Shown piece by piece: positions 8,361 through 41,900 of a DNA stretch of 64,000 bases. Made by a program: the position numbers and the translations under genes. How positions within the stretch are numbered: the stretch's first letter is position 1; each line of letters starts with the position of its first letter. Source of the stretch: Bugula neritina (lineage: Eukaryota > Animalia > Bryozoa). The notes under the pieces are model-generated. The model was not told the origin of the DNA. It saw only the letters and a program-made list of their open reading frames with translations, and made no database searches. The stretch covers positions 13,320,642 through 13,384,641 of the forward strand of contig OZ037770.1 of assembly GCA_964035545.1 (NCBI GenBank), read 5' to 3'.

Positions 8361-9147
8361 AAGTTTAGGAAAAACTAAAACAAATGAAAAATAGAGATAT
8401 AACTGGATGAAACCATTAATATACTTGTTTGAATAATTTAAATGAGATAGAGTTAGGTTTATTTGGTATTGACTGTTGACTTTATAAAGCTATCTTTAAT
8501 TAGATTACGCCTGTTAGAGTTTTCAAAACTGAAACTCAAAGTCAGTCAAACTGACTTTAATTTTTAGGGTAAGACTGAGACTCATAATGCTATAGTTACA
8601 GTGTTAGTGTTAAACTGTAGCAAGGACTGGCGGATAGCTTTGTTTTACTTTTTTGATTAAAATTGAATTTGATGCTGATTGTGATAAACAATAGCGTTAC
8701 TGTGAGTAACACTGTTCGTCTTAGTCTTACTGATACTCATAGTCATAGTCACTAGTGATACTGATGGTGAAACTCAAACTGATTGTCATCATAGTGATAA
8801 TCATAACCATAATGATAGCACTAGCCACCACTCATAAGAAATAGTAGATTTTATGAGTATCAGAATGACCATCATAATGATAATCTAAGAAAATTTCAAA
8901 TTACAAGAACAAAGTTAAATTACCATGACCCTGGCGATCATATGCATAGTGACTCAATTTGCCACTAGAAGAGTCCATCTTCATATAATTTGCTTATTAC
9001 AATAACTTTTCTTTAAAAGTAAAAGAAACCTGCAACTTGAACTCTAACACCTCCTAAATGCACAACCGGAACAGTACAAAGCTACTAGTACTCTAGTAGT
9101 ACTAGGGTTACTATAAATAACTAAATTTATGTCATATTAGATCAAAC

Positions 9148-12100
9148 ATGGCGGAGGCTGAATTTACTAGAAGTAATCAGTGTGGATTTTGCTTTCTTCA
9201 AGAAGGTTTGGAAGACCCCAAATCGCTACCTTGTGGTCACGCTCACTGTTTATCTTGTCTGAATGGTGATTTTGGTGTTAACAATATGGTGAGATGTCCT
9301 TGGTGTAGGTAAGTTATAATACAATTCATCTCGCCAATACAGACTTATGTATGATTATAGAGACCCGAATAACAATACATAAAAGTCTAGTGAATATTCA
9401 CAGTCAGTTTTTAACGCTTAAAATCGTGATTATTAACTGCATAGGACACTATAAAAGTGAAAATAGATTTATAAAATCGTTGCCTGGTAGTTTAGGATGA
9501 CTTAATTCAAATCTAACTGTGCTATTTTTTAGAGAAGTGTGTAATGTGAGTATAGACAGTCTCCCGTCTGCTGATAGGGAAGATAACTCCACACCTTGTG
9601 ACGTCTGCACTAAGAAAGAAATGAAAAACATATCGGCTGTCATTTACTGCACTTATTGTCATAAACTCCTCTGCCAGGAACATAATGAGGTTAGGATTTA
9701 TCTAAAGTTGTTTACTGTATTGGCTAAATATTTAGTTTTGCATATTTAAACTCAATTTTAATTATTGTTTTGTTGATTCAGTAAACTTGATTTAATAAAT
9801 AAATGTCAATAATAGTAAATTAATATTTAGTATCAATGCAATCCTTTTCACTGACTGGTGATAGAGAATGCTTTGTAAAGTTTTTTCCAGTTGTTAATTG
9901 GTTTATCAATTACTTGTTATTTGATACTCTAATTAAATGATTAATCGTTTTGAATTTTTATCGTGCTATAAATAAAATGTTTTGATTTGTAATAGCAACA
10001 TGATGTCGTGTGTGATGACCACCAGAAGATGACCATTTTTGACTACAGAATACAAGCCAAGAGACTGGAAAAAAGAGTTTGTCCCAAACACACAGACCAG
10101 CAGATATCTCAAGGATGTAGAGTCTGCATTCAGTTGTTCTGTGTGCAGTGTTTATCTGGTATTGAGTCATGTGTTGGAGGTAAGACTTTCTTAGTGCTTA
10201 AAGAATTTATTTAGTAGCTAGCAGGTACAAGTAGAAGTGCTATTGCGTTTATATTTACATTTAGTTATTAGCGATTTAGTAGATATGAGTAGAATTTGCT
10301 TATCTAAAATAGATTATAAATAAACTCTCGTTTGTTTATCATGTCCCATTTCTGTGATATTGTAAAAACTCGTTTCCATTGTTGGGAATGCTCTTCCTAA
10401 CATCACCAATGACCTTTACAGAGATTCAGACCCTGTGTTTACTGAGCCAGTGTTTTAACCCCTAGACCACGGCTACTCCATAGTATTTGTTATAAATATT
10501 GTGAGTTAAAAAGCTGGTGTACATATGTTACAGGCTCATCCCATGACATGGTGAGTCTAGATGACCTGGTTCAACACATAACAGATTTGAATAAACTGAT
10601 TGGTACAGAAGAAAAAGTGTCTGCTTTCTTCAAAAAGATTTCCAAAACTGTGTCTGATTTTGACACGGCGACAAGAGATATGTTGGATGTTCTATACACT
10701 CAACGTGATGAACAGGTGACTGTTTATATTAGGGTATTATACCTCGTAGCACTTGTGTGTATTATATTAAGGTATAGGAGCTATTGAGCTATAGGATTTG
10801 CATAGAGTTATGTGAGCTGTAACCAAATTTCAAACTATATCTTATCCTCGTTAGCACTTCTGTGTGTTATTTAAAATCATGGTTTTGTTTCAACCTACAT
10901 AGAATTATGCTGAATTGCAAACAAATTTCAAAATACAGTAGACTATACAAGGCACTCATGTTGCACACCATTTATTTTGTTAATGTTTGTATCTTCCTGC
11001 TAGATGAATGCTGGGATTTCGTGATATAGAAAGTTCTAGATGATAAAATATCTTTGACTTGTAATGTTATGACTAAACTTGTAGCTCTCATGAAATTATT
11101 TTTCATCTACTGATCTAGTTGACTGAAGTGAGACTGAAATATGAGAAACTGGAGAAGGAATTCTTGGCTAGTAGAAAGAAGACTAAAGAGGAACTGAACA
11201 GATACATGGAGAGAGAAGTTGGAACTGTTTGGTCTGAACTGAGCAGGAATAGAATGAAGATAGAAACTCAGCTCAGACGTGACAATCAGGTGTGTTTAAT
11301 ACCATTTTAGGTAAAAGTGGCAAAGATAAATATGGCACTAGTGAAATTGGCACAGGTAAAAATCACATGGTATAAATGGCACAAATAATAATGGCACAAA
11401 TGGAAAGTACGTAAAAATGGCACACTGATGTTGAATTTTCTCAAACTCAAACTCCCATTTCCAAACCCAAACCCCAAACCCTAATATTGAAAATGTGCCA
11501 TTATTACCTGTGCCATTTGTACCATGCCATTTTTACCTGTGTTATTTTTACCTACTTTGCCATTTTTACTGGACGCTGTTGAATACTTGTCTGATTTCTA
11601 ATTTAAAACTTTTGCTTTTCTGCTACTGCCGAGACCATTTAGCTCGAGAACACAACTCTAGTAATATATATAGTAGGTTTCAGTCTAAATAGATACTATG
11701 TTGTTAGATACATTTGTAGTCTCCAGCAGGAGTTGAGCTTTACTCTGTCATCCAATCCTATATCACTATGAAATCTTATTGGAGAACTTCATAGTTTTGT
11801 TATTGTAAAATGTGTTGGTTATGACTATGGCGGTTTTATTCTCTGCAGATGTTGAAGTGAATCTGCATTTTTAGGGAAAAAAGTGCATCTACATCTCAGT
11901 TTGCTTGACATAATAACATATATAGTAGCATATATATTGTTTGTAAGTTAATAGACACACAGATATTGCTTTGGCTAGCTGCCGTATTATTGTGTTGTAA
12001 GCCTTCACGCTTGATTCTTTCTGCGATTTCTGTTCATGGTATTCTGTTACATGCTGAAATAAACTGAACAGTCAAAGGCATTTTACAGGTGGATCTGGTT

Positions 12101-13303
12101 GAAGGATATGCAGAGATTAAAGAGAGAATACACAGACTGATATCTGTTGAGATACCTAAACTAGAGCTGTGTGATGTCATGTCTCTAAAGGTCAAAGGTT
12201 AGTATACTAAACTATAGCTTATCAATTTCTACTCTATTAGTAAAATATGAGATTCTTATATATACTGTAAGATAAAGTTTCTATACTTTATAGCATCTAC
12301 TATACCTCTATTTGTAGATGTTATTTCTATAGTTTATAGTATCACTGAACCTCTATTTGTAGACAAGAAAAGAGACATAGAAGTAGAAGTGGTATCCGAA
12401 GCAGATGTATCTGCTGGTTTAAATCAAGGAGTGATATTGTATACTCTTCCTAAATCTCTCAAACTCATCAAATCTGTTGATATTTCGAGTAACTCTCAGT
12501 CTGTCTGTGAATATAAGGGCAACACTTACATAGGATTGTCAGCGGGAGGGATAGACAGAATAGATGAGAGTCTCAATGTTACCAAATCATGTATTAGTAG
12601 TGATAGATTTGTGGAATCGGTTACTGTATATAAGGACAGAATATATGTGTTGTTTCGGGAGAATTTCAGTAGTGCTGTCACTGTGTACACTCTTGGTGGT
12701 GACCAGGTGATCAGATGGTCTCATGAGGGTGAAAGTTTTCATTACAACAAACTTGTAATTATTGATGATCAGGTTGTAGTCTCTAATAGACTTCGTCAAT
12801 CATTTACAATTTACTCTCTTACTGGGAAGGTAGTTAAGCATGTGCCTTGCTCTCTACTCAGTTCAGACTCCCCGGTAGCTATATGTACAGCAGACAGACA
12901 TTGTGTAGTAGTTTCTGACTCTGGTTCCTCTCAAGTATTTAAATTAAACTTGACAACAGAGAAAGTCATCTGGACATGCAAGGATGTATCTAAGCCAGAA
13001 AGTGTGACCTGCTATAGAAGTAAATATATTTTGTTGGCCAGCTACAACAGTAAAACTATCTGGGTACTGGATGTAAAGACAGGTTAGTAGACCATAGTCT
13101 TAGCATTGTATATATTCCATGTATATAAATCAGAGAAGGTGATTCAGGCCAGTAGCCATACATTTAATAATGTTGCAGGTGAACTCTTGTCTGAATTACG
13201 GGAGGCTAAAGGCAAAATTACTGTGTATGCTCTAGCTATATCTGGGAATACCTTGATCGTATCTTCTGGTAAGAAGAAAGTGCTGTTCTACCAGATGAAC
13301 TGA
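9148..13303 (+). CDS. TRIM-family E3 ligase (RING, B-box1, B-box2, coiled coil, NHL-like beta-propeller), copy 1, 602 aa
   Basis: Exons 9148-9308, 9533-9689, 9996-10179, 10534-10715, 11119-11289, 12089-12197, 12363-13082 and 13179-13303 total 1809 nt with consistent phases. C3HC4 RING CGFC..CGHAHCLSC..CPWC; B-boxes CDVC..CTYC..LCQEH and CPKH..CRVC..FCVQC; beta-strand repeats such as VAICTADRHCVVVSDSGSSQVFKL. AATAAA at 13352. Confidence 0.93.
10384..10479 (-). mobile_element. Truncated tRNA-derived SINE in TRIM copy 1 intron 3
   Basis: Homologous to 16587-16685 and 38425-38530 (shared atgctcttcctaacatcaccaat and cctagaccacggct). Confidence 0.7.
11302..11576. mobile_element. Foldback/Mutator-like MITE in TRIM copy 1 intron 5
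   Basis: Arms of ~15-bp subrepeats ggtaaaaatggcaca and inverted tgtgccatttttacc, with central aaaccccaaaccctaa. Flanking 9-bp direct repeat tgtttaata (11293-11301) / tgttgaata (11577-11585). Confidence 0.75.
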
Positions 13304-14589
13304 GCAGGTATACATTTTCATACTTAAACCGGTGTTTGACAATTTTTTGAGAATAAAATTAAGTTTTGAAAAAATGTTTGTAAAACAAAATGTAAATTAA
13401 ATTTGAACTTGATTTGGGTGAGTTTTCAGTCAATAATGTTGGTCTCTCTTTTCAAAGTCTATTCAGTCCGATTTGTATTTGAAATCGAGTCATGTGACCA
13501 TATTTCTCCTGAGATTTCTAATCCTCAAATTTCCAGCTTGTAAAAATTTTTTACTTAAAACATGAGATAGAGTTTTATTATTTTCATACTTATGCCACTA
13601 GAGTACCACCAGAATACGCTGCTTACATATAATCATTCTTGCTTTTAAGATTTAGATGTTTCTGGAAGTTGTCCTGTTAGACTGAGTTTCAGCTCCCAAT
13701 GGATGATGATGTTAGGGGTGACAATTGAAACATCTCAGTTAGATGCAACAACATTAGTTTATCTGACGTAAATACCACTTATCTCGATTTTTTGTTTGCG
13801 TTTAGATCTAATGTATAATAATATATTTACAACTCTTTAATAAGAATTTTTTGTTACTTTTTACTCATTGTGTGTTGTCATGGCTACTTAACCACAAAAT
13901 CTTAGCTATTCCTTGTCAAACATACAGTTGAAGAGAGCTCAGGCTACGAAGTAATCTTAGTTTTGTACTATATAATAGTAGTTCATGTAAGATAAACATA
14001 ACTAAATTTGTAATAAAGTTTACCATAACTGATAGACACTTGATTCATGTTCTGTAATATAAGTCATGTTAGATCATTAATCAAAGATCATACGCGAGTT
14101 TTTAATACAAATCAAAAGCACTTGATGCAAAGACAGCTTCCTGATTAATAAATATGTAGGCAATTTCAACGTTCTCAAGTTTTGGAAAACTGCTAAACTT
14201 TTTGATTATCTAAAATCTCCAATATATATTTACCTAAACCCACTGCAAGTTCTATTTTTCAAAATCCTGTTAACATACTGGAATGCTCGAATTTGTATTT
14301 AAGGTGAGAATTCCTACCTGCCACCACCTACGCTCTACCTGATATAATAAACACAATACTTATTTTAGCATATAAAAAGATGCATATTTTGTTTTTAAAT
14401 TGAGTTGCCACTTTTATATAGAATACAAATTTTCAAAATCATTAAAGCATTGGAACCACAAATGCAATTTGACACATCTGTTTTTGATGAACTACGCGTT
14501 GTAGGAGTTATCGTCTTCATTACATCTGCATTTAAAGAGACGTTATTGGACTCGATGAACTGGAAAAAAATAATATTGGTTCTAGCTCA

Positions 14590-14680
14590 GTGATTGGACT
14601 AACCAAAATCTCATTTGAGACCCATAATTTCCAAAGTGGCGGAATTTCCCCTGAAGTCCAGTGTGCCGAGGATACTAAAT
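14590..14680. promoter_or_regulatory. Putative promoter of TRIM copy 2 with NF-kB site
   Basis: GATTGG at ~14592, GGAATTTCCC at 14641-14650 (GGGAAATTCC on minus strand), followed by the gtgccgagga block shared with copy 1. Confidence 0.5.
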
Positions 14681-15373
14681 TTAGAATTACTAAAATTAAT
14701 ATAAATAGAGGTGACATTGAATGCAACGACAACTATGTCTGCTTAAATAGTTTAATTAAGATAGAGTTAGGTTTTATGTCACTTTAACTTAAAACTTTAT
14801 AAAGCTAGCTTTAATTATTTATAAACAGGTTGAGGTTATACCAATTTTAATTTTAATTTAAGTTTTGAATTTGATACTCCATAGTCATAGTGATAGTCAT
14901 GGTGATGGTCTATACCGACACTCGTACTGATGCCTATAGTCATACTCATACTCATAGCGATAGTCATAGTCGACAGTGATGCTGATGCCACTTTAAAAGC
15001 GTCAATATTAATATAATTTGCTTGTTACAATTGCTTTTCGTTAAAAGTAAAGGCAATCTGCAATTTGAACTCCAACAACTCCTAAATGTACACTTGGAAC
15101 AGTACAATGCTACTAGTTGTAGTACTAGTAAAAACTTGTAATTAGGGCAGATTACCTCAATCTCCTGTTTTCACAGTGACAATAAAATTGTTTTATAATG
15201 TATTTAAACACCTGGTTTAACTAACGTAATTGAATTTTTAACGAAAAACTGAACTGCAAACAAATAAACTATTCGTTCTCATTGCTATTTTTATTAAGTA
15301 TTTACTATGATTACTCTATATATAACTAAATTTATTATTTTATAAATGTAATATGTAACACTTCAGATCAAGC

Positions 15374-18300
15374 ATGGCGGTGGCTGAATTAACTAGAAGT
15401 AATCAGTGTGGATTTTGTTTTCTTCAAGAAGGTTTGGAAGACCCCAAGTTTCTTCCTTGTGGTCACGCTCACTGTTTATCTTGTCTAAATGGTGATTTTG
15501 ATGTTAACAATATGCTGAGATGTCCTTGGTGTAGGTAAGTGATCTTACATCAACTCCTCTCATCAGTACACACTAATGTATGTAGACCCGAATAACAGTA
15601 CATAAAAGCTTAGTGAATATTTACAGTCAGTTTTTAACGCATAAAATCGTGATTATAAACAGCATAGGACACTATAAAAGTGAAATAAATTTATAAAATC
15701 GTTGCCTGGTAGTTTAGGATGATTTAATTCAAATTTAACTGTGCTATTTTCCAGAGAAGTGTGTAATGCGAGTATAGAGAGTCTCCCGTCTGCTGATATG
15801 GAAGATAACTCCACACCTTGTGATGTCTGCACTAAGAAAAAAATAAAAAACATATCAGCAGTCATTTACTGTACTGTGTGTCATAAACTCCTCTGCCAGG
15901 AACATAATGAGGTTAGGGTTTATCTAAAGTTGTTTACTGTATTGGCTAAATATTTAGTTTTGCATTTTTAAACTCAATTTTAATTATTGTTTTGTTGATT
16001 CAGTAAACTTGATTGAATAAATAAATGTCAATAATAATAAATTAATATTCAATATCAATGCAGTCCTTTTCACTGACTGGTGATAGAGAACGCTTTGTAA
16101 TTTTTTTGCAATTGTTGACTGGTTTATCAATTACTTGTTACTTGATAATCTAATTAAATAATTTGTATCGTGTTATAAATAAAATGTTTGCTTTGTAATA
16201 GCAACATGATGTCGTCTGTGATGACCACCAGAAGATGACCATCTGTGACTACAGAATACAAGCCAAGAGACTGGAAAGAAGAGTTTGTCCCAAACACGCA
16301 GACCAGCAGATATCTCAGGGTTGTAGAGTCTGTGTTCAGTTGTTCTGTGTGCAGTGTTTATCTGGCATTGAGTCATGTGTTGGAGGTAAGACTTCCTTAG
16401 TGCTTAAAGAATTTATTTAGTAGCTAGCTGGTACAAGTAGCAGTGCTATTGCATTTATATTTACATTTAGTTTTTAGTGATTTAGTAGATATGAGTAGAA
16501 TTTGCTTATCTAAAATAGATTATAAATAAACTCTCGTTTCTTTATCTTGTCCCATTTCTGTGATATTGTAAAAACTCGTTTCCATTGTTGGGAATGCTCT
16601 TCCTAACATCACCAATAACCTTTACGGAGATTCAGACCCTGTGTTTACTGAGCCAGTGCGTTGACCCCTAGACCGCGGCTACTCCATAGTATTTGTTATG
16701 AATATTGTGAGTATAAAAGCCGGTGTACATATATCACAGGCTCATCCCATGACATGGTGGGTCTAGATGACCTAGTTCAACACATAACAGATTTAAATAA
16801 ACTGATTGGTACAGAGGAAAAAGTGTCTGCTTTCTTCAAAAAGATTTCCAAAACTGTGTCTGATTTTGACACGGAGACAAGAGATATGTTGGATGTTCTA
16901 TACACTCAACGTGATGAACAGGTGACTGTTTATATTAGGGTATTGTACCTCGTAGCACGTGTGTATTATTTTAAGGTATAGGAGCTATTGACCCCAACCT
17001 ACAGAGAATTATGTGAATAAATTTCAAAATACAGTAGACAGCACAAGGCACTTCTGCTGCACACGATTTATTTTTTTAATGTTCGTATCTTCCTGCTAGA
17101 TGAACGCTGTAAGTTACCGGGATTTGGCGATTTGGAAAGTTCTAGGTGATAAATTATGTTTGAGTTGTAATGTTAAATTTGTAGCTCAGTAATTGATTTA
17201 TTTTGAGACTATCTACTGATTTAGTTGAGTGAGGTGAGACTGAAGTATGAAAAACTTGAGAAGGAATTCTTAGCTAGTAGAAAGAAGACTAAAGAGGAAC
17301 TGAACAGATACATGGAGAGAGAAGTTGGAACCGTTTGGTCTGAACTGAGCAGGAATAGAATGAAGATAGAAACTCAACTTAGACATGACAATCAGGTGTG
17401 TTGAATAGGATTTTAGGTAAAATTGGTACAGGTAAAAATGGCACAAGTAATGATGGCGCAAATGGAAAGTGGGTACAAATGACACACTGATTTTACATTT
17501 TCTCAAACCCCAAACTCAGACTGCCATTTCCAAACCTAAACCCGCATCTCAAGCACCCAAACCCTAATATTGAGAATGTGCCATTTTTACCTACTTTGCC
17601 ATTTGTGCCATTTTTACCTGTGCCATTTTTACCGGACACTGTTGAATACTTGTCTGTTTTCTAATTTAAGACTTTTGCTTTTCTGCTACTGCCGAGACCA
17701 TTTAGCCCGGAACATAACTTTTAGATGCTATGTGTATAAAAAGATACATTTGTAGTCACTATCTATTGGGAGTTCAACTTTACTCTGTCATCCAATAATG
17801 TATCGCTATGAAATATCATCAGAGAACTTCATGGTTTTGTTATTGTGAAATGGGTTATAGTTAGTTATGGTTATGGTGAGTTTTATTCTCTGTAGATAAT
17901 GCAGATGTTGCATTGAATTTACTTTTTATGAGAAAAAATGAAAGTATACATCTCAGTTTGCTTGACATAATAACATATATAGTAAGGTATATATTGTTTG
18001 TAAGTTAATAGACACACCGATATTGCTTTGGCTAGCTGCTGTATTATTGTGTTGTAAGCCTTCACACTTGAGTCTTTCTGTGATTTCTGTTGATAGTGTT
18101 ATATTACGTACATGCTGAAATAAACTGAACAGTCAAAGTCGTTTTACAGGTGGATCTGGTTGAAGGATTTGCAGAGATTAAAGAGAGAATACAGAGGCTG
18201 ATATCTGTTGAGATACCTAAACTAGAGCTGTGTGATGTCATGTCTCTAAAGGTCAAAGGTTAGTATACTAAACTATAGCTTATCAATTTCTACTCTATTA

Positions 18301-19364
18301 GTAAAATATGAGATTCTTATATATACTGTAAGATAAAGTTTCTATACTTTATAGCATCTACTATACCTCTATTTGTAGATGTTATTTCTATAGTTTATAG
18401 TATCACCGAACCTCTCTTTGTAGACAAGAAAAGAGACATAGAAGTAGAAGTGGTATCCGAAGCAGATGTATCTGCTGGTTTAAATCAAGGAGTGATATTG
18501 TATACTCTTCCTAAATCTCTCAAACTCGTCAAATCTGTTGATGTTTCTAATGACTGTAGGTCTGTCTGTGAATATGAGGGCAACACTTACATAGGATTGT
18601 CAGTGGGAGGGATAGATAGAATAGATGAGGGTTTCAATGTTACCAAATCATTTATTAGTAGTGATAGATATGTGGAATCGGTTACTGTGTATAAGGACAG
18701 AATATATGTATTGTTTCGGGTGGATTACGGCAGTACTGTCAATGTTTACACTCTTAAGGGTGACCAGGTGATCAGATGGTATCATGAGGGTGAAAGTGTT
18801 CATTTAAACAAACTTGTAATTATTGATGATCAGGTTGTAATCCCTAATAGATGTCGTCAATCATTTACAATTTACTCTCTTACTGGGAAGGTAATTAAGC
18901 ATGTGCCTTGCTCTCTACTCAGTGCAGACTCCCCGGTAGGTATATGTACAGCAGGCAGACATTGTGTAGTAGTTTCTGACTGGGGTTCCTCTCAAGTATT
19001 TAAATTAGACTTGACAACAGAGAAAGTCATCTGGACATGCAAAGATGTATCTAAGCCAGAAAGTGTGACCTGCTATAGAAGTAAATATATTTTGGTGGCC
19101 AGCTACAACAGTAAAACTATCTGGGTACTGGATGTAAAGACAGGTTAGTAGACCATAATCTTAGTATTGTATATATTCCATGTATATAAATCAGAGAAGG
19201 TGGTTCAGGCCAGTAGCCATACATTTAATAATGTTGCAGGTGAACCCTTGTCTGAATTACGGGAGGCTGAAGGCAAAATTACTGTGTATGATCTAGCTAT
19301 ATCTGGGAATACCTTGATCGTACCTTCTGGTAAGAAGAAAGTGCTGTTCTACCAAATGAACTGA
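15374..19364 (+). CDS. TRIM-family E3 ligase (RING, B-box1, B-box2, coiled coil, NHL-like beta-propeller), copy 2, 602 aa
   Basis: Exons 15374-15534, 15755-15911, 16202-16385, 16740-16921, 17225-17395, 18150-18258, 18424-19143 and 19240-19364. Same exon lengths as copy 1, no stops or frameshifts, RING and B-box Cys/His pattern retained. Confidence 0.93.
16587..16685 (-). mobile_element. Truncated tRNA-derived SINE in TRIM copy 2 intron 3
   Basis: Same intron position as 10384-10479; same family as 38425-38530. Confidence 0.7.
17408..17639. mobile_element. Foldback/Mutator-like MITE in TRIM copy 2 intron 5
   Basis: Perfect 9-bp direct repeat tgttgaata at 17399-17407 and 17640-17648; inverted arms of ggtaaaaatggcaca subrepeats. 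Confidence 0.8.
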
Positions 19365-20608
19365 GCAGGTATACATTTTCATACTTGAACTGGTGTTCGA
19401 CAATTTTCTGAGAATAAAATTAAATTTTGAAAAAATGTTTGTAAAACAAAATGTAAATAAAATTTCAACTTGATTTAGGTGAGTTTTCAGTCAATAATGT
19501 TGGTCTCTCTTTTCCAAGTCTATTCGGTCAGATTTGTATTTGAAATTTCTCCTGAGATTTCTAATGATCAATTTTTCAGCTTGTAAAAACTTTTTACTTA
19601 AAACATGTTTTATTGTTTTATTATTTTCATACTTATGCCACTAGAATACCACCAGAATACGCTGCTTACATATCATCAATCTTGCTTTTAAGATTTAGAT
19701 GTTTCTGGAAGTTGTCCTGTGAGACTGAGTTCCAGCTCCCAATGGATGATGATGTTAGGGGTGACAGTTGAAGCATCTCAGTTAGATGCAACAACATTAG
19801 TTTATCTGACATAAATACCACTTAACTCGACTTTTTGTTTGTTTAGATCTAATGTATAATCATATATTTACAGCTTTTTAATAATAATTTTTGTTACTTT
19901 TTACTTATTGTGTTTTACTTATTATGTTATTATATACTTACTGTGTATTATCATGGTGGCTCACAGATATTAACTTATTTTTTGTAAATCATGCAATTGT
20001 AAGCTCAAGCGATATCTAATAAGAGTAAATTTATTTTTAGTTTGTAGTATAATATAATGGTGTGTCATGTAAGTTATATATACAAATATCCATGTTATAA
20101 ATTTATATTATAGTTTACAATATCTGGCCATTTATTCATAATATATGTTGGACTGTCAGTATATTATATTGTGTACGGTTCTTGTTTCAATGTCAACAAA
20201 CCTAGTTTAATTCACCAAAATCTAGGTAAAGTTTATTATAGTAATTTTTTAACTTTGTTTACATCATTGTAATAACCATTTCATGCCTTTATTACAGCTT
20301 TTTTTAATACCATCTGCTTGGATTTGTCTTATTTTTCACTCTGTATTCCATAAACATTCCAATGTCTATTGTTTGTGCAATAACTACTCAGTCATTTGAT
20401 TCATCTATTAGTAAATCAACATGAATAAAATAAATAAACTGTTTTTCCAACATTTCTAATTCATACTTTTTCAATTTTAATCAACTAGCAGACAGCTCAA
20501 GGGTATTCTCTACACACTAAAACTTGTTAGCCAAGTATCTCAATTTAGTTATTGCCAAATAAGATGTAACTTGCTGAAGTAAACAGTGTACTAGTTTGGT
20601 ATCCATTA

Positions 20609-23600
20609 CTAGTTGAAGAGCAACTCATTGAAGTACTTCAACTGAGAGAGTATACTAGTTTGGTATCTGTTTGTTGGTCGCACAACCTTCTGTCTATCTG
20701 CTCTCTCAAAGTTGGATCTGAACATCTCATAATATCCACCGTCTGCTAGGGTTACAGATCTCAGATCCATGCATCTCATTCTACAATCAGCCAATAAAGT
20801 AATCAGCTAGAATTATTTTTGAAACTGCATGGTGTGGACTGTAAACTTGCAAAGTAACTACTACTGCTACTAATAATAATAATCATAATTTATTAATTGA
20901 AACAATATTTTACACATGACACTAATTCTGAACAGATATTACGACTTGTATGAACTATTTTTACATTAGTTGTCCAGAAAGTTAAATGTGAATCGCATCA
21001 ATATGATTGGTTTTGATACCCTTACTTTGACTAATCAAGTTCAATTTTTTCGAGAAAACATAGTCACGCTAGAAGATCAGCCAATCACTGATCATACATG
21101 AGTTTTTATACAAGCACTACCTTTGTTTATACTTATTTCTAGCGCAAACGTTACAGTAAACACCTGAATCAACTCACCTCATCAAATCGATGAATTTGCT
21201 ACTCTTATCACTGTATCGTATTGTATCAGGTTCCCACTGTATCTCTACTCGAACAAGTCGTCTGCTGTGAGTAGCTAAGGCATTTATTATCTGATCCACG
21301 TGTACTCTACTCATGTTGCCGTGAAACCAGCCATGTGCTTTACCAATAGTCAAAATTCTAAAACATAAAATAAAAAATAATTTAAAAATCTAAAGTGAGT
21401 TTAACCACAATTTCACTTTCAAACACGAATAAGGTGTTGTAGAAATTGAGCATATTACTCAAATGATTGATTACCGAACCGTAACCAAATATTGAGTTTC
21501 CTACAATTAACTGAAGAACGGTTTTGTTCATCCATCATTTATGAGCTCTACTCACCGGATGTTAGGTAAATGAGGTATAGCAGCCAGCCAGAAGTGCTCA
21601 TCTAGTTTAGATTTACCGTTCAACATGAGACCATGTAGCATGTGTCCGTGTGTTTGTATGTAGTTCATGATGACTTGGTCTGAGAGGCTGTATGTGTTAC
21701 TCAAGTCCACACTCTTTAGAAGTTCCAGTTTGTTGTTGGTAGACATTGACAGTAACACCTGCAACCAAAGATGGAGGTATATGACAGGTAATTCAATAGC
21801 CCATAATATGCTTTAATTAATTGTTTTCATGATGTTTTGGCTTAGAGAGCTCAAAGTATTGCAGAAATACCGTGACTTGTTTTGTGAGATTTTTTATCTT
21901 CACCTAAGCTTTATTATTTCAAGGTATTTTATTGTAGGCCTATAAAAACTGACACAAGGCACGTGTGCAAATTAAATAATTTTTCTCATTTCATACATTA
22001 TTAATACACCTATGAATTTGTTCTATAAAACGACTTAATACTTGAATGCGTATTTTCTAAGTGTATAGTTTCATTGCTCTTGCAAATTTAGCAATATGCA
22101 TATTTAAACTTTAAAGACACATTTTACCGTACAAATTTCTGTATTTTATTTAAAGCAGAAAGTTTAAAAGGAAGGGTAGAATGTGAATGCATTGGTTTTG
22201 TGTAGAGCAAATTGAATTTTACTGAATTTACTTGTAATTTTTTTAACCCTTACTTTATGAATGGTATCCTTGAGACTCTGGTTTTAGGTATACATTGAAG
22301 AGTTATCTTACCTTGTCAGTGAAGAAGTCGCAGTGAGCTACAGAGAGAAATGAGAGACTCGGTAGTTTAGTGAGTAGTTCCATTATAGTGTTCTCACTTA
22401 AATCAGTGCAACTGATGTCTAACTCCTTTATATGCTTACACTTGTGCCAGTCTACTGCCTCCATATATTCATCCTTGAGGTCTGAAATAGGCATTTCATA
22501 GTGCGAGTGGAGTTATCTCCCTTCTTATTCCACTCTAGAGAGTCATGTATAGAAGAATGCATTATGAAAGTTGTAAAACTTCATTATATGCATTATAAGT
22601 TTTTAACTTAAAAACTTGGTGTGCTTTGGCTTTTCCTATTGCATTGTGTTACACTAGTCTGCCTATATAGGCCCATGCTCTGTATATACAATACTCTGTA
22701 TACACAATACTCAAGCTATGCATGCATATGGACAATTAATAGTTACTGTAATATATCAGTATATGCAATAGAGAAAATGTTTGAAATTAATTTATCCACC
22801 TTTTTTGACAAATTTTAAATGTTTCTCTTGATCTTGGTAATTATACAATAAGATTAATACTTAGATGGTAGCTAATTAAAAACATATTTAAGTATATCTT
22901 TTTATACAAGCGACTCAAATTATTCAAGTTCACATAATTTCTTTAATAAAAGCATTATAACTTAGTAGCAGGAGTAGGTATGACAATGTTCTCTACCTGT
23001 ATGGCGAAGAAGCAGCGTTTGAAGTTTCTTACAGCGAGACGTCAGATGTTTGAGAGACGACCCAGTCACCTGCAGGCAGTAGTTTACCGCCAAAACCTCC
23101 AGGTGGATGCAACTGGCCGCCAGCATTTCAAGATGGCTGTCTTCCACAAATGTTACCCCGTAAAAGTTCACTATCCGTAGATTAGGAGTGTAACCTCTTA
23201 TTTTCCCGATGTTTATGACTTCAAACTTTTCTTCACTTTCACTGGACAGATCAAATGTACCTACGCACATGCAATACCGACACACATACAGACGCAGTTG
23301 GCTGCTTGTAAAGTAAGAGGAACATTATGCTATTTAAGTAAACTTTGTCTAAAAAACTGGATGCATTGGAGTTGTCTTATCTCAATTAAAAACCTCATTT
23401 AGATTTTTCAGCAGTAAACTTTCTGCATAAATCAACAGTCTGTTGCACAGACATCTTTGTAGGCATATTGTATTTACTATAACTACTGTACTTACTATAC
23501 TTACTGTATTTACTATACTTCCTGTATTTACTATACTTCCTATAACTACTGTACTTACTATACTTACTGTATTTACTATATTTACTATACTTACTGTATT

Positions 23601-25261
23601 TACTATACTTTCTATAACTACTGTACTTCCTATAACTACTGTACTTACTATACTTACTGTATTTACTATACTTACTATAACTACTGTACTTACTATACTT
23701 ACTGTATTTACTATATTTACTATACTTACTATAATATTTACTATACTCACTATATTTACTATACATATTATACTCACTATAATTACTATATTTACTATAC
23801 TTACTATATTTACTTGTCTATAGTATCAAGCAAGCTTAGCATGAACCCCTCTACTATAGCTCAGAGCCTACCAATAAGGTGAAGGACTTTCAGAGACGAC
23901 AAGAAGCTGTAGACTCTCCTCATGAACCCCTCAAGGAAGACAACTTCTGAGAGACAGATACACAGGCTATATAAGTTGCTAGGGAAGCTGTTGAGGTCGG
24001 TGAAGTCATACAGCTAAAACAATAGTATAGTACTCAGGCTAAGATTGGAAGAGGCTCAATTAACCAATCAAAACGCTAGTTACATTCTGTTAATGTGTAA
24101 TTTTGTTCCCAGAGAAATGTTTCTCTTCGATATGTGAATACAGTCACCTGTGTAGCCTTAGAGAAGTCTAAAGTCATTCTCTTCACCCCTGGACACTTAT
24201 TGGCCAGTTCATGGACCACAGGCACAGTTATAAACTCGCATGGTAAATCTATAGATCGCAGCTGATTTGCAAATCTGAAAAAGTTTCAAGACTATAAGTA
24301 GTTTGAGAGAATATAACTTTTCTGCATGGGACATAACTACAGGTTGATGCATCATAGTAACTTAGTAATTTGTCAGGTTTTTATTAACTGCCTGATACTA
24401 AATCAAAAGCAGCCTAAATTTCATGACCAAAGCTAAGCAAAACACAACATTACCAAATCATAGAACATAAGTTCAGATACTTCATTTTCTTAGTTTATAC
24501 AGAATCTATGTGCCTCTTTTTACCTCACACTAATGAGAGCCATGATAGCCTGAGCCTGTACACTGTAGTCTGTGTACTCTGCTCTAAACGTCATGTCTTT
24601 CCATAACTGGCCATTGTAGCTGAGTAATCTCCACTTGCGACATACTAGGGCCACAGTCTTGGCCAGTTCTCTGTGAGGGACGTATGACAATACCGAGAGC
24701 AAGCTCTTCTCTGGCAGATCATTTATATGCAGCTAAAAAATAAGATATATATACCATACATGTTGTGTGTATGTGTATGTGTATGTGTGTGCTCTCGTGT
24801 AAAATTGTAAATTTTTACTAATATAACAGATTGCGTGCTTAGATATTGCTGCTTCCTTGTATTAAATGTCCATGTTGAGTTAGCACATATAATATGTTCA
24901 TAATATTATCTACCCAACTGGTTATTTACTAATTGGACGAACATATTGCATTGTATGTATTTTTGTGGTATGTTTAGACCTATAAAGTAGACTTTAACTT
25001 ATAAATACTTATAAACCATCCAACCAATAACCCACATGCACATGTTGACAAATATACTGACACATATACTAACACATATACTGACACATATACTGTTACT
25101 GACACATATACTGACACATATACTGACAAATATACTGACACATATACTGATACATATACTGACACATATACTGACACACATATACTGACACATATACCTA
25201 CCCCTACATGTTCCGTTAAGGCAGAGTCCTCTCCAACTCTCCCATGCTCTTCCTCACTCAT
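20609..25261 (-). CDS. F-box/leucine-rich-repeat (FBXL) protein, 506 aa
   Basis: Exons 25261-25208, 24732-24524, 24274-24148, 24013-23872, 23260-22997, 22481-22312, 21758-21556, 21357-21178 and 20780-20609 total 1521 nt with consistent phases. F-box INDLPEKSLLSVLSYVPHRELAKTVALVCRKWRLL..LWK; Cys-containing LRRs (CIHLEVLAVNYCLQVT, IKELDISCTDLS). First coding exon is less certain. Confidence 0.9.
23463..23815. repeat. Intronic 9-bp-period minisatellite (ttactatac-like)
   Basis: Direct inspection; source of the spurious YSK/TIL ORFs. Confidence 0.95.
25050..25200. repeat. 12-bp tandem repeat tactgacacata
   Basis: About 12 copies starting just inside the minus-strand donor at 25206-25207. Confidence 0.9.
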
Positions 25262-34600: not shown

Positions 34601-34962
34601 GTATTTGCAGTGGTGGAGAAAGCCAACAGTGGCCGGATGTCTCCCATCAGAAAGAGGTCTGTCAAGGATACCAAACAGGTAAGTCTTGTACGATATATGC
34701 AGCAGGTAGAAGTCTCATGTACATTACACACAGTTACTAAACTTAGCCTGTGCTCTGTCCCTGTAGCAAATAGAGACTCTTGAGAAGGAGAACTTTGACC
34801 TGAAGCTGAGGATCTACTTCCTAGAGAATCAGAAGGGGGTCAACAAGGATGACACCCTCAAAGTGAATATCGACCTGAGAGTTCAGCTACAGAGCATTCA
34901 CCAGGAGTTTCAGAGGAAGCAGGATACCTGGGAGCAGATGATGTGAGTAGTGATAGTTAGTG

Positions 34963-35004
<42 letters not shown>

Positions 35005-35168
35005 GTAGTAGCAGTAGCAGTAGTAGTAGCAGTAGCAGTAGTAGTAGTACTAGTAGTAGTAGTAGTGGTAGTAGTAGTAGTAATAGTAGTAGTAGCAGCA
35101 GTAGTAGTAGTAGTAGTAGCAGTAGCAGTAGCAGTAGTAGTAGCAGTAGCAGTAGCAGTAGTAGTAGC

Positions 35169-35217
<49 letters not shown>

Positions 35218-35279
35218 CTAGTAGTAGTAGTAATAGTAGTAGTAATAGTAATAGTAGTAGCAGTAGTAGTAGCAGTAGC

Positions 35280-35319
<40 letters not shown>

Positions 35320-35495
35320 CTAGTAGTAGTAGTAGTAGTAGTAATAGTAATAGTACTAGTAGTAGCAGTAGTAGTAGCAGTAGTAGTAGTAGTAGTGGTA
35401 GTGGTAGTAGTAGTAGTAGTAGTAGTAGTAGTACTAGTAGTACTAGTAGTAGTAGTAGTAGTAGTAGTAATAGTACTAGTAGTAGTAGCAGTAGC

Positions 35496-35526
<31 letters not shown>

Positions 35527-35751
35527 ATAGTAGTAGCAGTAGTAGTAGCAGTAGTAGTAGTACTAGTAGTAGTGGTAGTAGTAGTAGTAGTGGTAGTAGT
35601 AGTAGTAGTAGCAGTAGTAGTAGTAGCAGTTATAGCAGTTATAGTAGCAGTAGTAGTAGTAGTAGTGGTAGCAGTTATAGCAGTTATAGTAGCAGTAGTA
35701 GTGGTAGTAGTAGTAGTGGTAGTAGTAGTAGTAGTGGTAGTAGTAGTAATG

Positions 35752-35791
<40 letters not shown>

Positions 35792-35882
35792 CAGTGGTAG
35801 TAGTAGCAGTAGTAGTAGTAGTAGCAGTAGTAGTAGTAGAAGTAGTAGTAGTAGTAGTAGCAGTAGTAGTAGCAGTAGTAGC

Positions 35883-35962
<80 letters not shown>

Positions 35963-38900
35963 TAATAGTAGTAGTAGTAGTACTAGTAGTAGTAGTGAGT
36001 AGTAGTAGCAGTAGCAGCAGTAGCAGCGATAGTGGTGGCAGCGATAGTGGTAGTGTTGTAGTAGTAGTTTTATACAACTAATAGTATTGATAGTGATAGA
36101 TGTATAACAAAGTAGGTAACTATCTGATAGTCTGAGATCTAATTGACTGATTGTAGGACTGGTTATGAGAGCCACATTGAAGAACTAGAGCAGAGGCTAC
36201 AGACTGACCAGTCGGCTGATTTGGTGCGGGACTATGAGAACCTGAAGTTGAAACTCGCCACCACCGAGCTCAGGTATGCTGTGTGTAGCTCAGGTATGCT
36301 GTGTGTAGCTCAGGTATGCTGTGTGTAGCTCAGGTGTGTAGCTCAGGTGTGTACCCCAGGTGTGCTGTGTGTAGCTCAGGTGTGTAGCTCAGGTGTGCTG
36401 TGTGTAGCTCAGGTGTGGGGCTCAGGTGTGCTGGGTGTATTATTCTCAGCCTGGTGTTTTCTTACCTCCAGTCTCCAAGAGATGGAGCAGCTGCTGAACG
36501 ACAAGGCGTTTGAGAGTCAAGGTCAGCTTCAGTCAGCCACCCAGGAGATTGAGAAGTTGAAGGAGCAGCTCGCTGATCGGGAGAGGCAGCTGATCACGTC
36601 ACCCACCCAAGGTGAGTCTGTCTGACCCACCTAAGGTGTGTCAATTTAGCCGCCCAAGGTGGGCCACAATGTAGCCCACCTTAGGTGAGGCACTAGTGTG
36701 TGCGTTTATATATAAGTGGATAACCACCTCAGCTGTCAGTTACTATGACTATTGCTTTAAGTTAACATAAATAAGTTATCAATGATCTTTTCAAAAAGTT
36801 ATCTCATCTTCATCAGTACTCAATCCATGGAATACTGTTCAACATTAGTTCATACTTTGCCAACACATAATCTCAATAGTAGAGTTCATGATGTTTCAGA
36901 AGATTCTACAAGTGGTACGTTGCATCACACTTCCTGTTTATGCTGCCTTGTTATCCGTCAATATTCTGCATTTGTTATGATTTGCTATAAATGATTTGTG
37001 TTGCATGTTCCATTGTTATGCTGCCGAGTTGTAGTTTCTCTAAAATGGAATTATAATTTAGGTTATTCAAAGTTGTGTTCTCAATTTATTAATTTGGGGA
37101 AGTCAATTTCATTTGATTCGATGAAAATATACTGCTTTGCTTTTCCGTTCATCACAGACAGCCTTTCCCTAGTTTATCAATGTTTGGCCAAGTTTATTTT
37201 TAAGTAACTTGAGATTTTTTTCAGTTAGCATGTCCTCCCTTCATACTTTCTATATTGAGGCTGTTGCTTTGAAAATTCAAGTGAGGTGAAATGGGTTTTA
37301 TCTAAATTAATAACTTCGAATTGTGGGCTGTATATTCATATAGCCGCCTTCTTGTAGTACCATAAACTACTGTATCATACTACATTCTATCAGCTAACTA
37401 TCTACTCACTCTACTGTAGTATATATTAATACACACTATACTATACTCTACACACTATACTCTACACACTATACTATACTCTACACACTATACTATACTC
37501 TACACACTATACTATACTCTACACACTATACTATACTCTACACACTATACTATACTCTACACACTATACTATACTATACACACTATACTATACTACACTA
37601 TGCTATACTATACTATACTATACTATACTCTACACACTATACTATACTCTACACACTATACTATACTCTACACACTATACTATACTCTACACACTATACT
37701 ATACTCTACACACTATACTATACTCTACACACTATACTATACTCTACACACTATACTATACTCTACACACTATACTATACTCTACACACTATACTATACT
37801 CTACACTCTATACTATACTCTATTCACTATACTATACTCTACACACTATACTCTACACACTATACTATACTCTACACACTATACTATACTATACACACTA
37901 TACTATACTCTACACACTATACTATACTCTACACACTATACTATACTCTACACACTATACTATACTCTACACACTATACTATACTATACACACTATACTA
38001 TACTCTACACACTATACTATACTCTACACACTATACTATACTCTACACACTATACTATACTATACACACTATACTATACTCTACACACTATACTACACTA
38101 TACAACTATACTGTGGTATATATGTACAGAGGAACTACTGGAGCTGAAACACTCACTGAGTGAGAGAGAAAGTGCACTAGAAGATAAAGACCTTCTCCTC
38201 TCTACTTATTCTCAGCAAGTGAAAGATCTGGAAACTCAGGTGCGTTATTCCATTCCTACTGTAGAGTTGTCTTCTCTACTCACAATACTTTCACTATGAG
38301 ACACTTGACAACCTCATACAAGTTTATTGGTCACCATCTCTGTGGGAAAACTCCTGATGGAAAGGGTTTTTGTTAAATTGGGCTAAGGACTTATTCATAT
38401 GTGACACAGGAGCCATTATGACTGGATGCTCTTCCTAACATCACCAATGGCCTTTGTCGGGTTCGAACCCATGACTTCGTGCTTACTAGGCAAACACTCT
38501 AAAGCTAACTCCTAGACCACGGCTGTTCCCGTGACAGTTACAAGTTTTGTAACTGAATAAAATTTCAACATTGCGCATATTTCTAGTATTTTTTCTGTAA
38601 GTTCTGTCGCTGATGACTTCATTATGTCTTCTAAAACCAGTTCTGTTGCATGTTGTTGAGTTGTTGACCTCCAAGCTTGTATTTGCTCTCCGAACAGTTG
38701 AAGCAGGTGATAGCCAAGCTCTCAATGACCTCTAATGACCTGTCGGAGAAGGAGAAAGAGCTCAGTGCCAGGGACAGCGAGCTAAACGAGAAAGACCAGG
38801 AGTTGCACGCTGTCAAAGACGAGCTGACGCAGCGGGACTTCTCTCTGAGGAAGGCTCAAATAGACTTACAGGTACGCAGCTAATGCTAAGTGTAGGTTCG

Positions 38901-41900
38901 CAGTTAATAATACCTGGCTGTACCGACACTACCAAGTTTATGAATATGATTTATTCTGCTATATTTATCTAGCTTACAGAGTCACAGGTAATACCTGGCC
39001 AGGTAACGAGTCTATATCCCACCCTGTTTCCCCGGAATATCTGGTCATGTGATCATCTTGTATTCTGATATTAATTTTCTGAGTTTCTCTAATTCACTGT
39101 AATTGTACCTGTTTCACAATCTCTTGAATGTTTCAACTTCTGACTGCCAATGTGTTCACTATACCTAATGTTTATTTCTATTTCAATCTGATTATAACGT
39201 AGCAATTATAGTATAACATAATGTAGTAATTATAATAATATAATATAGTCACTATAATATAATATAGTAGATATAATGATAATAATGCAATATAGCAATT
39301 ATAAAGTAGTAATTATGTTATAATATAATGTAGTAATTATAGTATAATGTAATATAATAATAATATAATAGCATAATATAGTAATTATAATAATATAATG
39401 GAGTAATAATAAAATAGTTATATAATATATTCATATCTGTTTCCTAGGCCCTCGGCACATCTAAAGCAGGCACAGACGTAGAGTTGGAGAAATACAGAGC
39501 AGAGTTGGCTGAGAAGTTTCACCTTGACACTCAGTCTATGGCCTCGGAACTGCATACTGCACAGAAACTGGTGGCGTACCGAGGTGGGTGCAGCTTGAGT
39601 TCCAGATCTCAGTCTATTCTATGTCACGTCAGGTTTATTGGGGTTTGGTTAGTGATGACCTTTGAATAAATTGCTAGTTTCTTGACTATTGAAGGGTATT
39701 TGTTTACTTGTCAATCAACTGTTCATAGTTGGGAGAAACCAGTATTCAATATGTATTTCTCAATCACTCTTCCTGCTTCAAAATTTTAATAAAAGTTTGG
39801 AAATTTTGAAGTTTTTGCTGAAAGTTATTCAATGTACAAGTGGGACAAGTGGGCATGTCACCTGAAACTTGTGTGTTCATCAAAGTTGTTATCTCTGCTA
39901 TATACACCGTAAGGTCGTGACCTCTCTAAGCTATATACACTGTAAGGTCATGACCTCTCTAAGCTTTATAATGTAAGGTCGTGACCTCTATAAGCTCGAT
40001 ACACTGTAAGGTCATGACCTCTCTAAGCTTTATAATGTAAGGTCATGACCTCTCTAAGCTTTATAATGTAAGGTCGTGACCTCTTTGCTGGCAGATGCTG
40101 AACTGGCTGCTAAGAGCAAGGAGTTCAAGTCTCTAGAGAAGAAGTTGACAGAGAGGGATGAGAGTCTCGGCTGTATGAACGACGAGATCAATAGGCAGCG
40201 GCAGCAGATGGCGGTACGTCTTGTCTGTCTGTTTGTCTCCGTAATGCTGCGTTATGATGTGGCTGTAGTACTGCTAGAGTTTTGATGGGAGTACTATGTG
40301 TTCTGTGCCTGTTGAATTTTATATCTTTCTGCTGTTTATTTCATGGAGAATTGGAGTAGCCATAGCAATTGTTTATGGTTGCTGGTTAGATTCGGTCTTA
40401 GATGATAGTTGTATTTTATATCTCACTTTGTAGTTTGTAGTTGAAGTGAATATGTTAAAAACTTATCTTATTTTTTATTATTGATTATGGGTTTTGATGA
40501 TAGTGGAGATGTTTAAAGGCTGAGAGTGTGTTGTAGATGCTGAGCCAGTCAGTCACTGATCTGAAGTCAGCGCTGAGGGACAAGGAGAGGCAGCTGGAGG
40601 AAGCTCGGCAGCACCTGCAGCTCAATGCTGACAAGTTTAGTAAAGACGTGGCCAACCTGGAGCAGCAGATGGTGCTCCTTCAGAATACCATCAACACCAA
40701 AGATATGGAGATTGAGGTACTATTCATATATGTAGTGTAATATATAATATATGTAGTGTAATATAATATATGTAGTGTAATATAATATATGTAGTGTGAT
40801 GTAATATATGTAGTGTAATATAATATATGTAGTGTAATATAATATATGTAGTTTAATATAATATATGTAGTGTGATGTAATATATGTAGTGTAATATAAT
40901 ATATGTAGTGTAATATAATATATGTAGTGTAATATAATATATGTAGTGTAATATAATATATGTAGTGTGATGTAATATATGTAGTGTGATGTAATATATG
41001 TAGTGTAATATAATATATGTAGTGTGATATAATATATGTAGTGTAATATAATATATGTAATGTAATATAATATATGTAGTGTAATATAATATATGTAGTG
41101 TGATATAATATATGTAGTGTGATATAATATATGTAGTGTAATATAATATATGTAGTGTAATATAATATATGTAGTGTGATATAATATATGTAGTGTGATG
41201 TAATATATGTAGTGTAATATAATATATGTAGTGTGATATAATATATGTAGTGTAATATAATATATGTAGTGTAATATAATATATGTAGTGTAATATAATA
41301 TATGTAGTGTAATATAATATATGTAGTGTAATATAATATATGTAGTGTAATATAATATATGTAGTGTAATATAATATATGTAGTGTAATATAATATATGT
41401 AGTGTGATATAATATATGTAGTGTAATATAATATATGTAGTGTGATGTAATATATGTAGTGTAATATAATATATGTAGTGTGATGTAATATATGTAGTGT
41501 AATATAATATATGTAGTGTAATATAATATATGTAGTGTAATATAATATATGTAGTGTAATATAATATATGTAGTGTAATATAATATATGTAGTGTGATAT
41601 AATATATGTAGTGTAATATAATATATGTAGTGTGATGTAATATATGTAGTGTAATATAATATATGTAGTGTGATGTAATATATGTAGTGTAATATAATAT
41701 ATGTAGTTTAATATAATATATGTAGTGTGATGTAATATATGTAGTGTAATATAATATATGTAGTGTGATGTAATATATGTAGTGTGATATAATATATGTA
41801 GTGTAATATAATATATGTAGTGTGATGTAATATATGTAGTGTAATATAATATATGTAGTGTAATATAATATATGTAGTGTAATATAATATATGTAGTGTA

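Follow-up and report, generated by a model that had tools for sequence, protein, structure and literature searches.

Diversifying selection on the predicted propeller face of an expanded bryozoan TRIM family that includes a tandem gene pair of Bugula neritina

TRIM proteins work as antiparallel coiled-coil dimers, with B-box-driven clustering, RING activation and ubiquitination. A filamin-type domain is found in TRIM2, TRIM3 and TRIM71, and is absent in Brat and TRIM32. In the TRIM-NHL proteins (class VII or subfamily C: Brat, Mei-P26, Thin/Abba, LIN-41/TRIM71, TRIM2, TRIM3 and TRIM32), a RING, two B-boxes and a coiled coil precede a six-bladed propeller, whose top face is made of the b-c and d-a loops (PMC4015489). 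These proteins are conserved and number three to five per genome (PMC4015489). In primate TRIM2, two sites are under selection, neither of them inside a domain (PMC3845644).

The class IV TRIMs (primate TRIM5 and TRIM22; fish finTRIM, btr and trim35/hltr) show tandem expansion, recombination between copies and an RBCC half that stays constant while the C-terminal recognition loops are under positive selection (PMC3137616, PMC3845644). Their recognition module is the B30.2/PRY-SPRY domain. Lineage-specific multiplication has likewise been described in a marine invertebrate, the sea urchin, with 140 annotated TRIMs (PMC13043383), and for TRIM-like genes in a bivalve B-box orthogroup (PMC8382680). 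In the accessible parts of these two sources, the expansions are reported as counts, without selection analysis or mapping of a variable face, and we liken them to the present family by description only.

The stretch of B. neritina DNA analysed here (the window) is 64,000 nucleotides long and has a GC content of 34.8%. Self-alignment of the window revealed a tandem duplicate of ~4.8 kb (9139–13876 and 15365–19916), carrying two forward-strand genes, A (9148–13303) and B (15374–19364). Both were modelled with eight exons, with every intron GT-AG, and encode 602 amino acids with zero internal stops. The exons of B lie at 15374–15534, 15755–15911, 16202–16385, 16740–16921, 17225–17395, 18150–18258, 18424–19143 and 19240–19364. 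An initial annotation had called the genes twins; they are indeed tandem duplicates, but the word understates their setting, a family of ~150.

Pfam searches of both genes were run exon by exon. Exon 1 of gene A (9148–9308) encodes a C3HC4 RING (E = 5.5e-5, under the curated cut-off), with all eight ligands in order (C12, C15, C29, H31, C34, C37, C50 and C53) and an Arg next to the last Cys. The RING motif is intact, and E3 ligase activity is predicted from it. A type 1 B-box in exon 2 (9533–9689) was recognised by a weak Pfam match (E = 0.006) and by its Cys/His spacing, and a type 2 B-box in exon 3 (9996–10179) by a match over the cut-off (PF00643, 24.8 bits). The coiled coil starts in exon 4 (10534–10715), continues through exon 5 (11119–11289) and ends in exon 6 (12089–12197), followed by a linker. 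As a stand-in for A and B, the full-length fold was taken from a Watersipora homolog (P0109), in which the coiled-coil helices are predicted at residues 184–227, 230–282 and 285–304. The initial annotation had called the genes TRIM genes, and RING, both B-boxes and coiled coil were all located, by Pfam, ligand spacing or the homolog model. The protein begins with the RING, and inspection showed no obvious signal or membrane segment; a cytosolic location is therefore predicted.

According to the predicted structures, exon 7 of A (12363–13082) encodes linker, the closing strand of blade 6, blades 1–4 and three strands of blade 5; exon 8 (13179–13303) adds the last strand of blade 5, blade 6 and the stop. 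Exon 7, folded as a single exon, gave a model with a pLDDT of 85. Its best structural matches were the NHL domains of Brat (Z 21.9), Mei-P26 (21.8), Thin (21.7) and TRIM3 (21.3), with 11–15% identity and an rmsd of 2.2–2.7 Å to solved NHL domains at Z 21–22; in the same structure search, YWTD propellers scored within 1–2 Z units of these. In the homolog model, RING and B-boxes were followed by a long coiled coil and then by 24 strands arranged in six blades with 3+1 closure, and NHL structures were again its top matches. At the sequence level, the Pfam NHL profile (PF01436) had no match to A or B at E ≤ 1 and gave weak matches to 11 of 62 relatives, the best at E = 1.5e-4, and a sequence search of the PDB returned nothing significant. 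Both models predict that the C-terminus is a six-bladed NHL-like propeller, in agreement with the beta-propeller of the initial annotation. No filamin match was found, a short linker alone lying between coiled coil and propeller. Likewise, no B30.2/PRY-SPRY domain was found at the C-terminus, where the predicted structure has the propeller fold in its place.

In the 216-Mb genome, exon 7 had at least 150 matches and the B-box 2 exon at least 142, largely co-located in tandem arrays on contigs C1–C9. The family thus comprises roughly 140–150 TRIM-propeller genes. About 64 of the propeller exons were 53–64% identical to that of A, the exception being exon 7 of B (18424–19143), with 87%. The closest outside proteins were from JGI contigs labelled AY690838, a Bugula label. 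Because their identity to the analysed genome paralogs was at most 93%, either the JGI sample belongs to a sister lineage or turnover of the repertoire is rapid. One JGI contig, L051, formed a separate long branch with A and B, and the pair is an outlying, diverged two-gene branch of a ~150-member bryozoan TRIM expansion. In-frame stops were present in 4 of the 20 paralogs fetched whole, consistent with birth-and-death evolution.

In Watersipora subatra, RefSeq proteins (XP_067940943.1, XP_067944866.1 ‘TRIM2-like’ and others) have the same domain order and propeller family, a length of 560–626 amino acids and many copies; they are only ~30–35% identical, and their names are automatic or ‘uncharacterized’. 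Two metagenome locus scans found nothing. No publication on this TRIM-propeller family was found in the literature searched, beyond whose reach lay most subscription journals.

By predicted fold, the family falls among the TRIM-NHL proteins, and the face that varies in it is the face on which these bind their ligands. It differs from them in its ~150 copies and hypervariable face, in the missing filamin domain and in the missing Pfam NHL match for A and B. Since it has no B30.2 domain, it is not a member of class IV; it further differs in its lophotrochozoan lineage. Multigene arrays and positive selection in the putative recognition domain, as in class IV, were nevertheless both found.

Selection was analysed with codon site models in our own implementation, with relative branch lengths fixed and an omega grid, on 50 exon-7 sequences. 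Among these were 48 genome exons of the at least 150, all from the closest clades. The 2ΔL values were 571 for M1a/M2a, 603 for M7/M8 and 515 for M8a/M8, with an omega of ~5 at 9–15% of sites. The signal was kept under F61 frequencies, without indel-adjacent columns and with site-variable silent rates (grid model). Indel misalignment was rejected as its cause, the result being unchanged on 189 indel-free columns. When data were simulated five times on six segment-specific trees with no positive selection, the M7/M8 values were at most 26; the optimiser produced some negative M8a/M8 values in them, so small statistics are noisy. Recombination as the source of the family signal was rejected by these simulations (≤26 versus 603) and by tree-free counts.

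Loop classes were preset from the model strands and the published top-face definition (PMC4015489). Tree-free dN/dS in the top face was 2.97 [1.99–4.23] in the C3 clade and 2.21 [1.52–3.19] in the C6 clade, against 0.57 and 0.69 in bottom loops and 0.57 and 0.75 in strands. The background dN/dS of the family was high, at 0.5–0.8. Site mapping on 47 paralogs, with A, B and L051 excluded, yielded 28 selected sites, 21 of them in top-face loops (p = 2e-9) and one in a bottom loop; Tyr, Asn and Arg were enriched at these sites relative to the remaining ones. In the N-terminal half of 15 intact full genes, M1a/M2a was 0.0, compared with 165 for exon 7, and M8a/M8 was 10.9, with three sites past B-box 2. 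Pairwise dN/dS of this half among 11 C6 genes was 0.44 [0.35–0.58]. Diversifying selection is focused on ~20–30 top-face residues, in the family and in the pair, and the N-terminal half is constrained.

The pair itself was recounted. Exon 7 differs between A and B by 32 replacement and 6 synonymous codons and exon 5 by 2 replacement and 8 silent codons, while intron 6 has 2 differences in 165 nucleotides, exactly as first counted. The exon-7 dN/dS was 1.38 (Fisher p = 0.22); weighting transitions raised it to 1.71 (p = 0.088). It was not significantly above 1 over the exon, and the pair alone is no proof of selection. Replacement divergence (pN) was 0.063 in exons 7–8 versus 0.030 in exons 1–6 (p = 0.003), the latter being under purifying selection (dN/dS 0.21). 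Neutral divergence changed in the opposite direction, from 9.2% in introns 1–5 to 1.9% in introns 6–7 (p = 7e-6; silent sites, p = 6e-4), and from exon 6 onward it was 3–5 times below that of the 5′ half. The contrast of exon 7 with exons 1–6 thus arises from doubled replacement divergence together with 3–5-fold lower neutral divergence. Such a lowering, together with a 209-bp run identical in A and B (12137–12345; a probable conversion tract that covers the last part of exon 6 and the bulk of intron 6), points to partial gene conversion of the 3′ half, and partial homogenisation of that half is what conversion would leave. The 32:6 versus 2:8 contrast, offered in the initial annotation as evidence of selection, is insufficient alone, because dS was lowered in the partly homogenised half. 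For the same reason, and with p values of 0.09–0.22, pairwise exon-7 dN/dS was rejected as proof; the pair illustrates how conversion can inflate this ratio.

At the 28 sites defined without the pair, A and B differ at 12, versus 20 of the 211 sites elsewhere in exon 7. Their pN at these sites, 0.24, was above both the local silent rate of 0.04 (p = 1e-5) and the highest neutral rate of the pair, 0.13 (p = 0.012), so the pair shares in the family diversification. All five variable patches quoted in the initial annotation were found in exon 7, and replacements are clustered, modestly (12 close pairs versus 7.8 expected, p = 0.04). In the model, the patches fall in the d-a loop into blade 1 (residues 364–367, 12488–12499), the b-c hairpin of blade 2 (421–426, 12659–12676), the d-a loop joining blades 2 and 3 (447–449, 12737–12745) and the end of strand b with the b-c loop of blade 3 (461–465, 12779–12793; only 465 is family-selected), and within the blade-4 b-c loop, residue 508 (12920–12922), also under selection, is Ser versus Trp. 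The diversification of face-forming loops proposed in the initial annotation was supported by the selection concentrated on b-c and d-a loops across the 47 paralogs; in the pair itself, strict top loops hold only 14 of the 32 changes, bottom loops 5 and strands 13, several of the last at the edges of hairpins.

A different pattern was seen in exon 6. That of gene A was 94–98% identical to paralogs whose exon 7 was merely 75% identical, and near-identical, silent sites included, to paralogs of the C6 arrays 2–4 Mb off. In exon 6, silent divergence from these arrays was 0.02 for A and 0.05 for B; it was 0.18 in exon 5 and 0.23–0.52 in exons 1–4 and 7. The exon-6 deficit reached significance in every comparison with 11 paralogs (p = 7e-6 to 4e-3; the tests are not independent). 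The likeness takes in ~25 bases of intron 6 before it ends, and it stops short of intron 5. The C3 arrays have their own uniform and distinct exon 6, with 2.3 differences within and 12 between. These sequence comparisons point to exon-scale conversion among loci 2–4 Mb apart on one chromosome, strong nucleotide-level constraint being the alternative. The family appears to turn over by birth-and-death and to exchange exon-sized pieces among its members.

We propose, with a probability of about 0.6, that A and B belong to an expansion of TRIM ligases with a variable recognition propeller, which would sense fast-changing non-self molecules. By extension from TRIM biology, the proteins would be cytosolic antiparallel coiled-coil dimers bearing two propellers, and would cluster through their B-boxes on a multivalent target. 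Binding and clustering would activate the RING, and the active RING would ubiquitinate the target or a signalling partner. Positive selection leaves the identity of the selecting agent unspecified. The arms-race pattern would suit fast-evolving non-self targets, most likely proteins from viruses or microbes that live inside cells, and an immune or restriction role of the family is suggested by analogy. A fuller version, taken as a whole, strikes us as rather unlikely: a cheilostome germline repertoire of >100 cytosolic sensors of non-self, built on a TRIM-NHL-like scaffold and convergent with TRIM5/finTRIM, in which conflict diversifies the top-face loops and conversion keeps the coiled-coil end uniform within chromosome-level subfamilies, giving mixed-propeller dimers with combined specificities. 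Preservation of heterodimer compatibility by exon-6 homogenisation is a hypothesis within it.

Two other explanations concern the pair only. Its differences could reflect relaxed constraint after duplication, with conversion erasing silent differences; gene A might then be in decay, and the signal of the family would not apply to the pair. The non-significant exon-wide ratio, the lowered 3′ neutral divergence and the stops in other paralogs are compatible with this. So are the family-conserved propeller sites, which change in the pair at 0.78 times the local silent rate: ten changes there could be polarised by L051, seven falling on gene A, some at near-invariant positions (C366S, F398C and D517N), which suggests some relaxation of constraint in A. 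However, changes are five times enriched at the independently set selected sites and there surpass even the pair's highest neutral rate; the same sites vary relative to the second-sample homolog, neither gene has a broken reading frame or splice site, and exons 1–6 are under purifying selection. We therefore regard relaxation as an improbable account of the pair. Mis-assembly of two haplotypes into a tandem arrangement is far less probable still: B. neritina is highly heterozygous (PMC7576161), but the copies lie 6.2 kb apart on one 16-Mb contig, their introns differ by 6–11% with many indels and their silent sites by 13%, and their flanks differ upstream and far downstream.

The other two concern the ligand. 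The propellers could be diversified RNA readers, like Brat/LIN-41, that pursue the RNA of transposons or viruses or other selfish elements, ubiquitination being a secondary function. The nearest structural matches are NHL domains that bind RNA through this very top face (PMC4015489); the face is net positive in most paralogs (median ~+4), and the variable sites are rich in Tyr and Arg. Its charge nevertheless varies between −3 and +9, with just +2 in A and +1 in B, the known RNA-binding TRIM-NHLs are few and conserved, and loop-length changes with an omega of ~5 would better suit protein–protein conflict; we consider RNA reading unlikely. Pathogen defence could also be replaced by colony-level self/non-self discrimination (fusion, somatic parasitism) or by control of bacterial symbionts, as the animal is colonial with known bacterial symbionts (PMC7576161). 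The repertoire is large and polymorphic, as such a role would allow, but the protein is predicted to be cytosolic, with a RING at its start, and members of the family occur on at least nine contigs. To our knowledge, known allorecognition determinants are surface proteins encoded at few loci, and we hold this role to be quite improbable.

If the TRIM-propeller proteins are recognition proteins that sense non-self, they would provide a concrete candidate for a diversified intracellular immune repertoire in Bryozoa, of which we found none described in the literature searched. With ~28 sites mapped onto a stable six-bladed scaffold, the family lends itself readily to ligand screens and loop swaps. 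The strategy of TRIM5 and the finTRIMs would then have arisen independently, on a domain that elsewhere is a conserved binder of RNA or protein.

The tandem duplicate genes A and B are adjoined by an F-box/leucine-rich-repeat gene on the opposite strand (window positions 21552-24702, minus strand; F-box-like, E 9.5e-10). A stop-free, low-complexity frame of at least 776 codons was located at positions 3-2330 of the minus strand, extending past the window edge, and had no Pfam match. On the plus strand, positions 36100-62000 contained exon-like fragments with coiled-coil character, belonging to a long gene with large minisatellites in its introns. Two of these are built from a 19-bp unit, with 68 copies at 40726-42027 and 232 copies at 45243-49639; a 1.1 kb AGT repeat (34946-36023) was grouped with them.

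Intron 5 of both A and B contains a small, MITE-like inverted-repeat element with 15-bp units (11309-11570 in A, 17415-17633 in B), which is the most diverged portion of the pair. Broken-up retrotransposon genes (integrase, reverse transcriptase and RNase H) were found on a JGI contig (L052:5431-8043), immediately downstream of a family member.

Outside the propeller, a weak positive-selection signal was detected among 15 genes at three sites directly after B-box2, in protein residues 160-168 (exon 3/4 junction). Four paralogs had in-frame stops, in exon 5 (L039), exon 2 (L042), exon 1 (L043) and exon 7 (L050), and are probable pseudogenes.

Exon 6, encoding the coiled-coil end and linker, together with ~25 nt of intron 6 (12089-12225), was near-identical between A/B and distant paralogs of the tandem arrays on contig C6 (L005-L050). 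The paralogs on contig C3 carried a different exon 6 version, uniform among themselves. A ~51-bp unit, comprising the exon 6 end and the splice donor (as at 12156-12219), was repeated in intron 6 of paralogs such as L016, L022, L030, L025 and L044. More than one match was present in 23 of the 51 loci, with a maximum of seven, and A and B have one copy each.

Two paralogs, L033 and L034 (G000:C6:11483257 and C6:11539626), have identical exons 7 and matching B-box exons at a separation of 56 kb, suggesting either that the segment was duplicated very recently or that the assembly contains it twice. On contig C3, L031 and L049 were near-identical in exons 2 and 6 (silent-site divergence, pS, of 0.05 and 0.03, respectively) and diverged in exons 1, 3, 4 and 7 (pS 0.29-0.52). 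Judged by these divergences, the pattern is a mosaic, indicative of exchange exon by exon.
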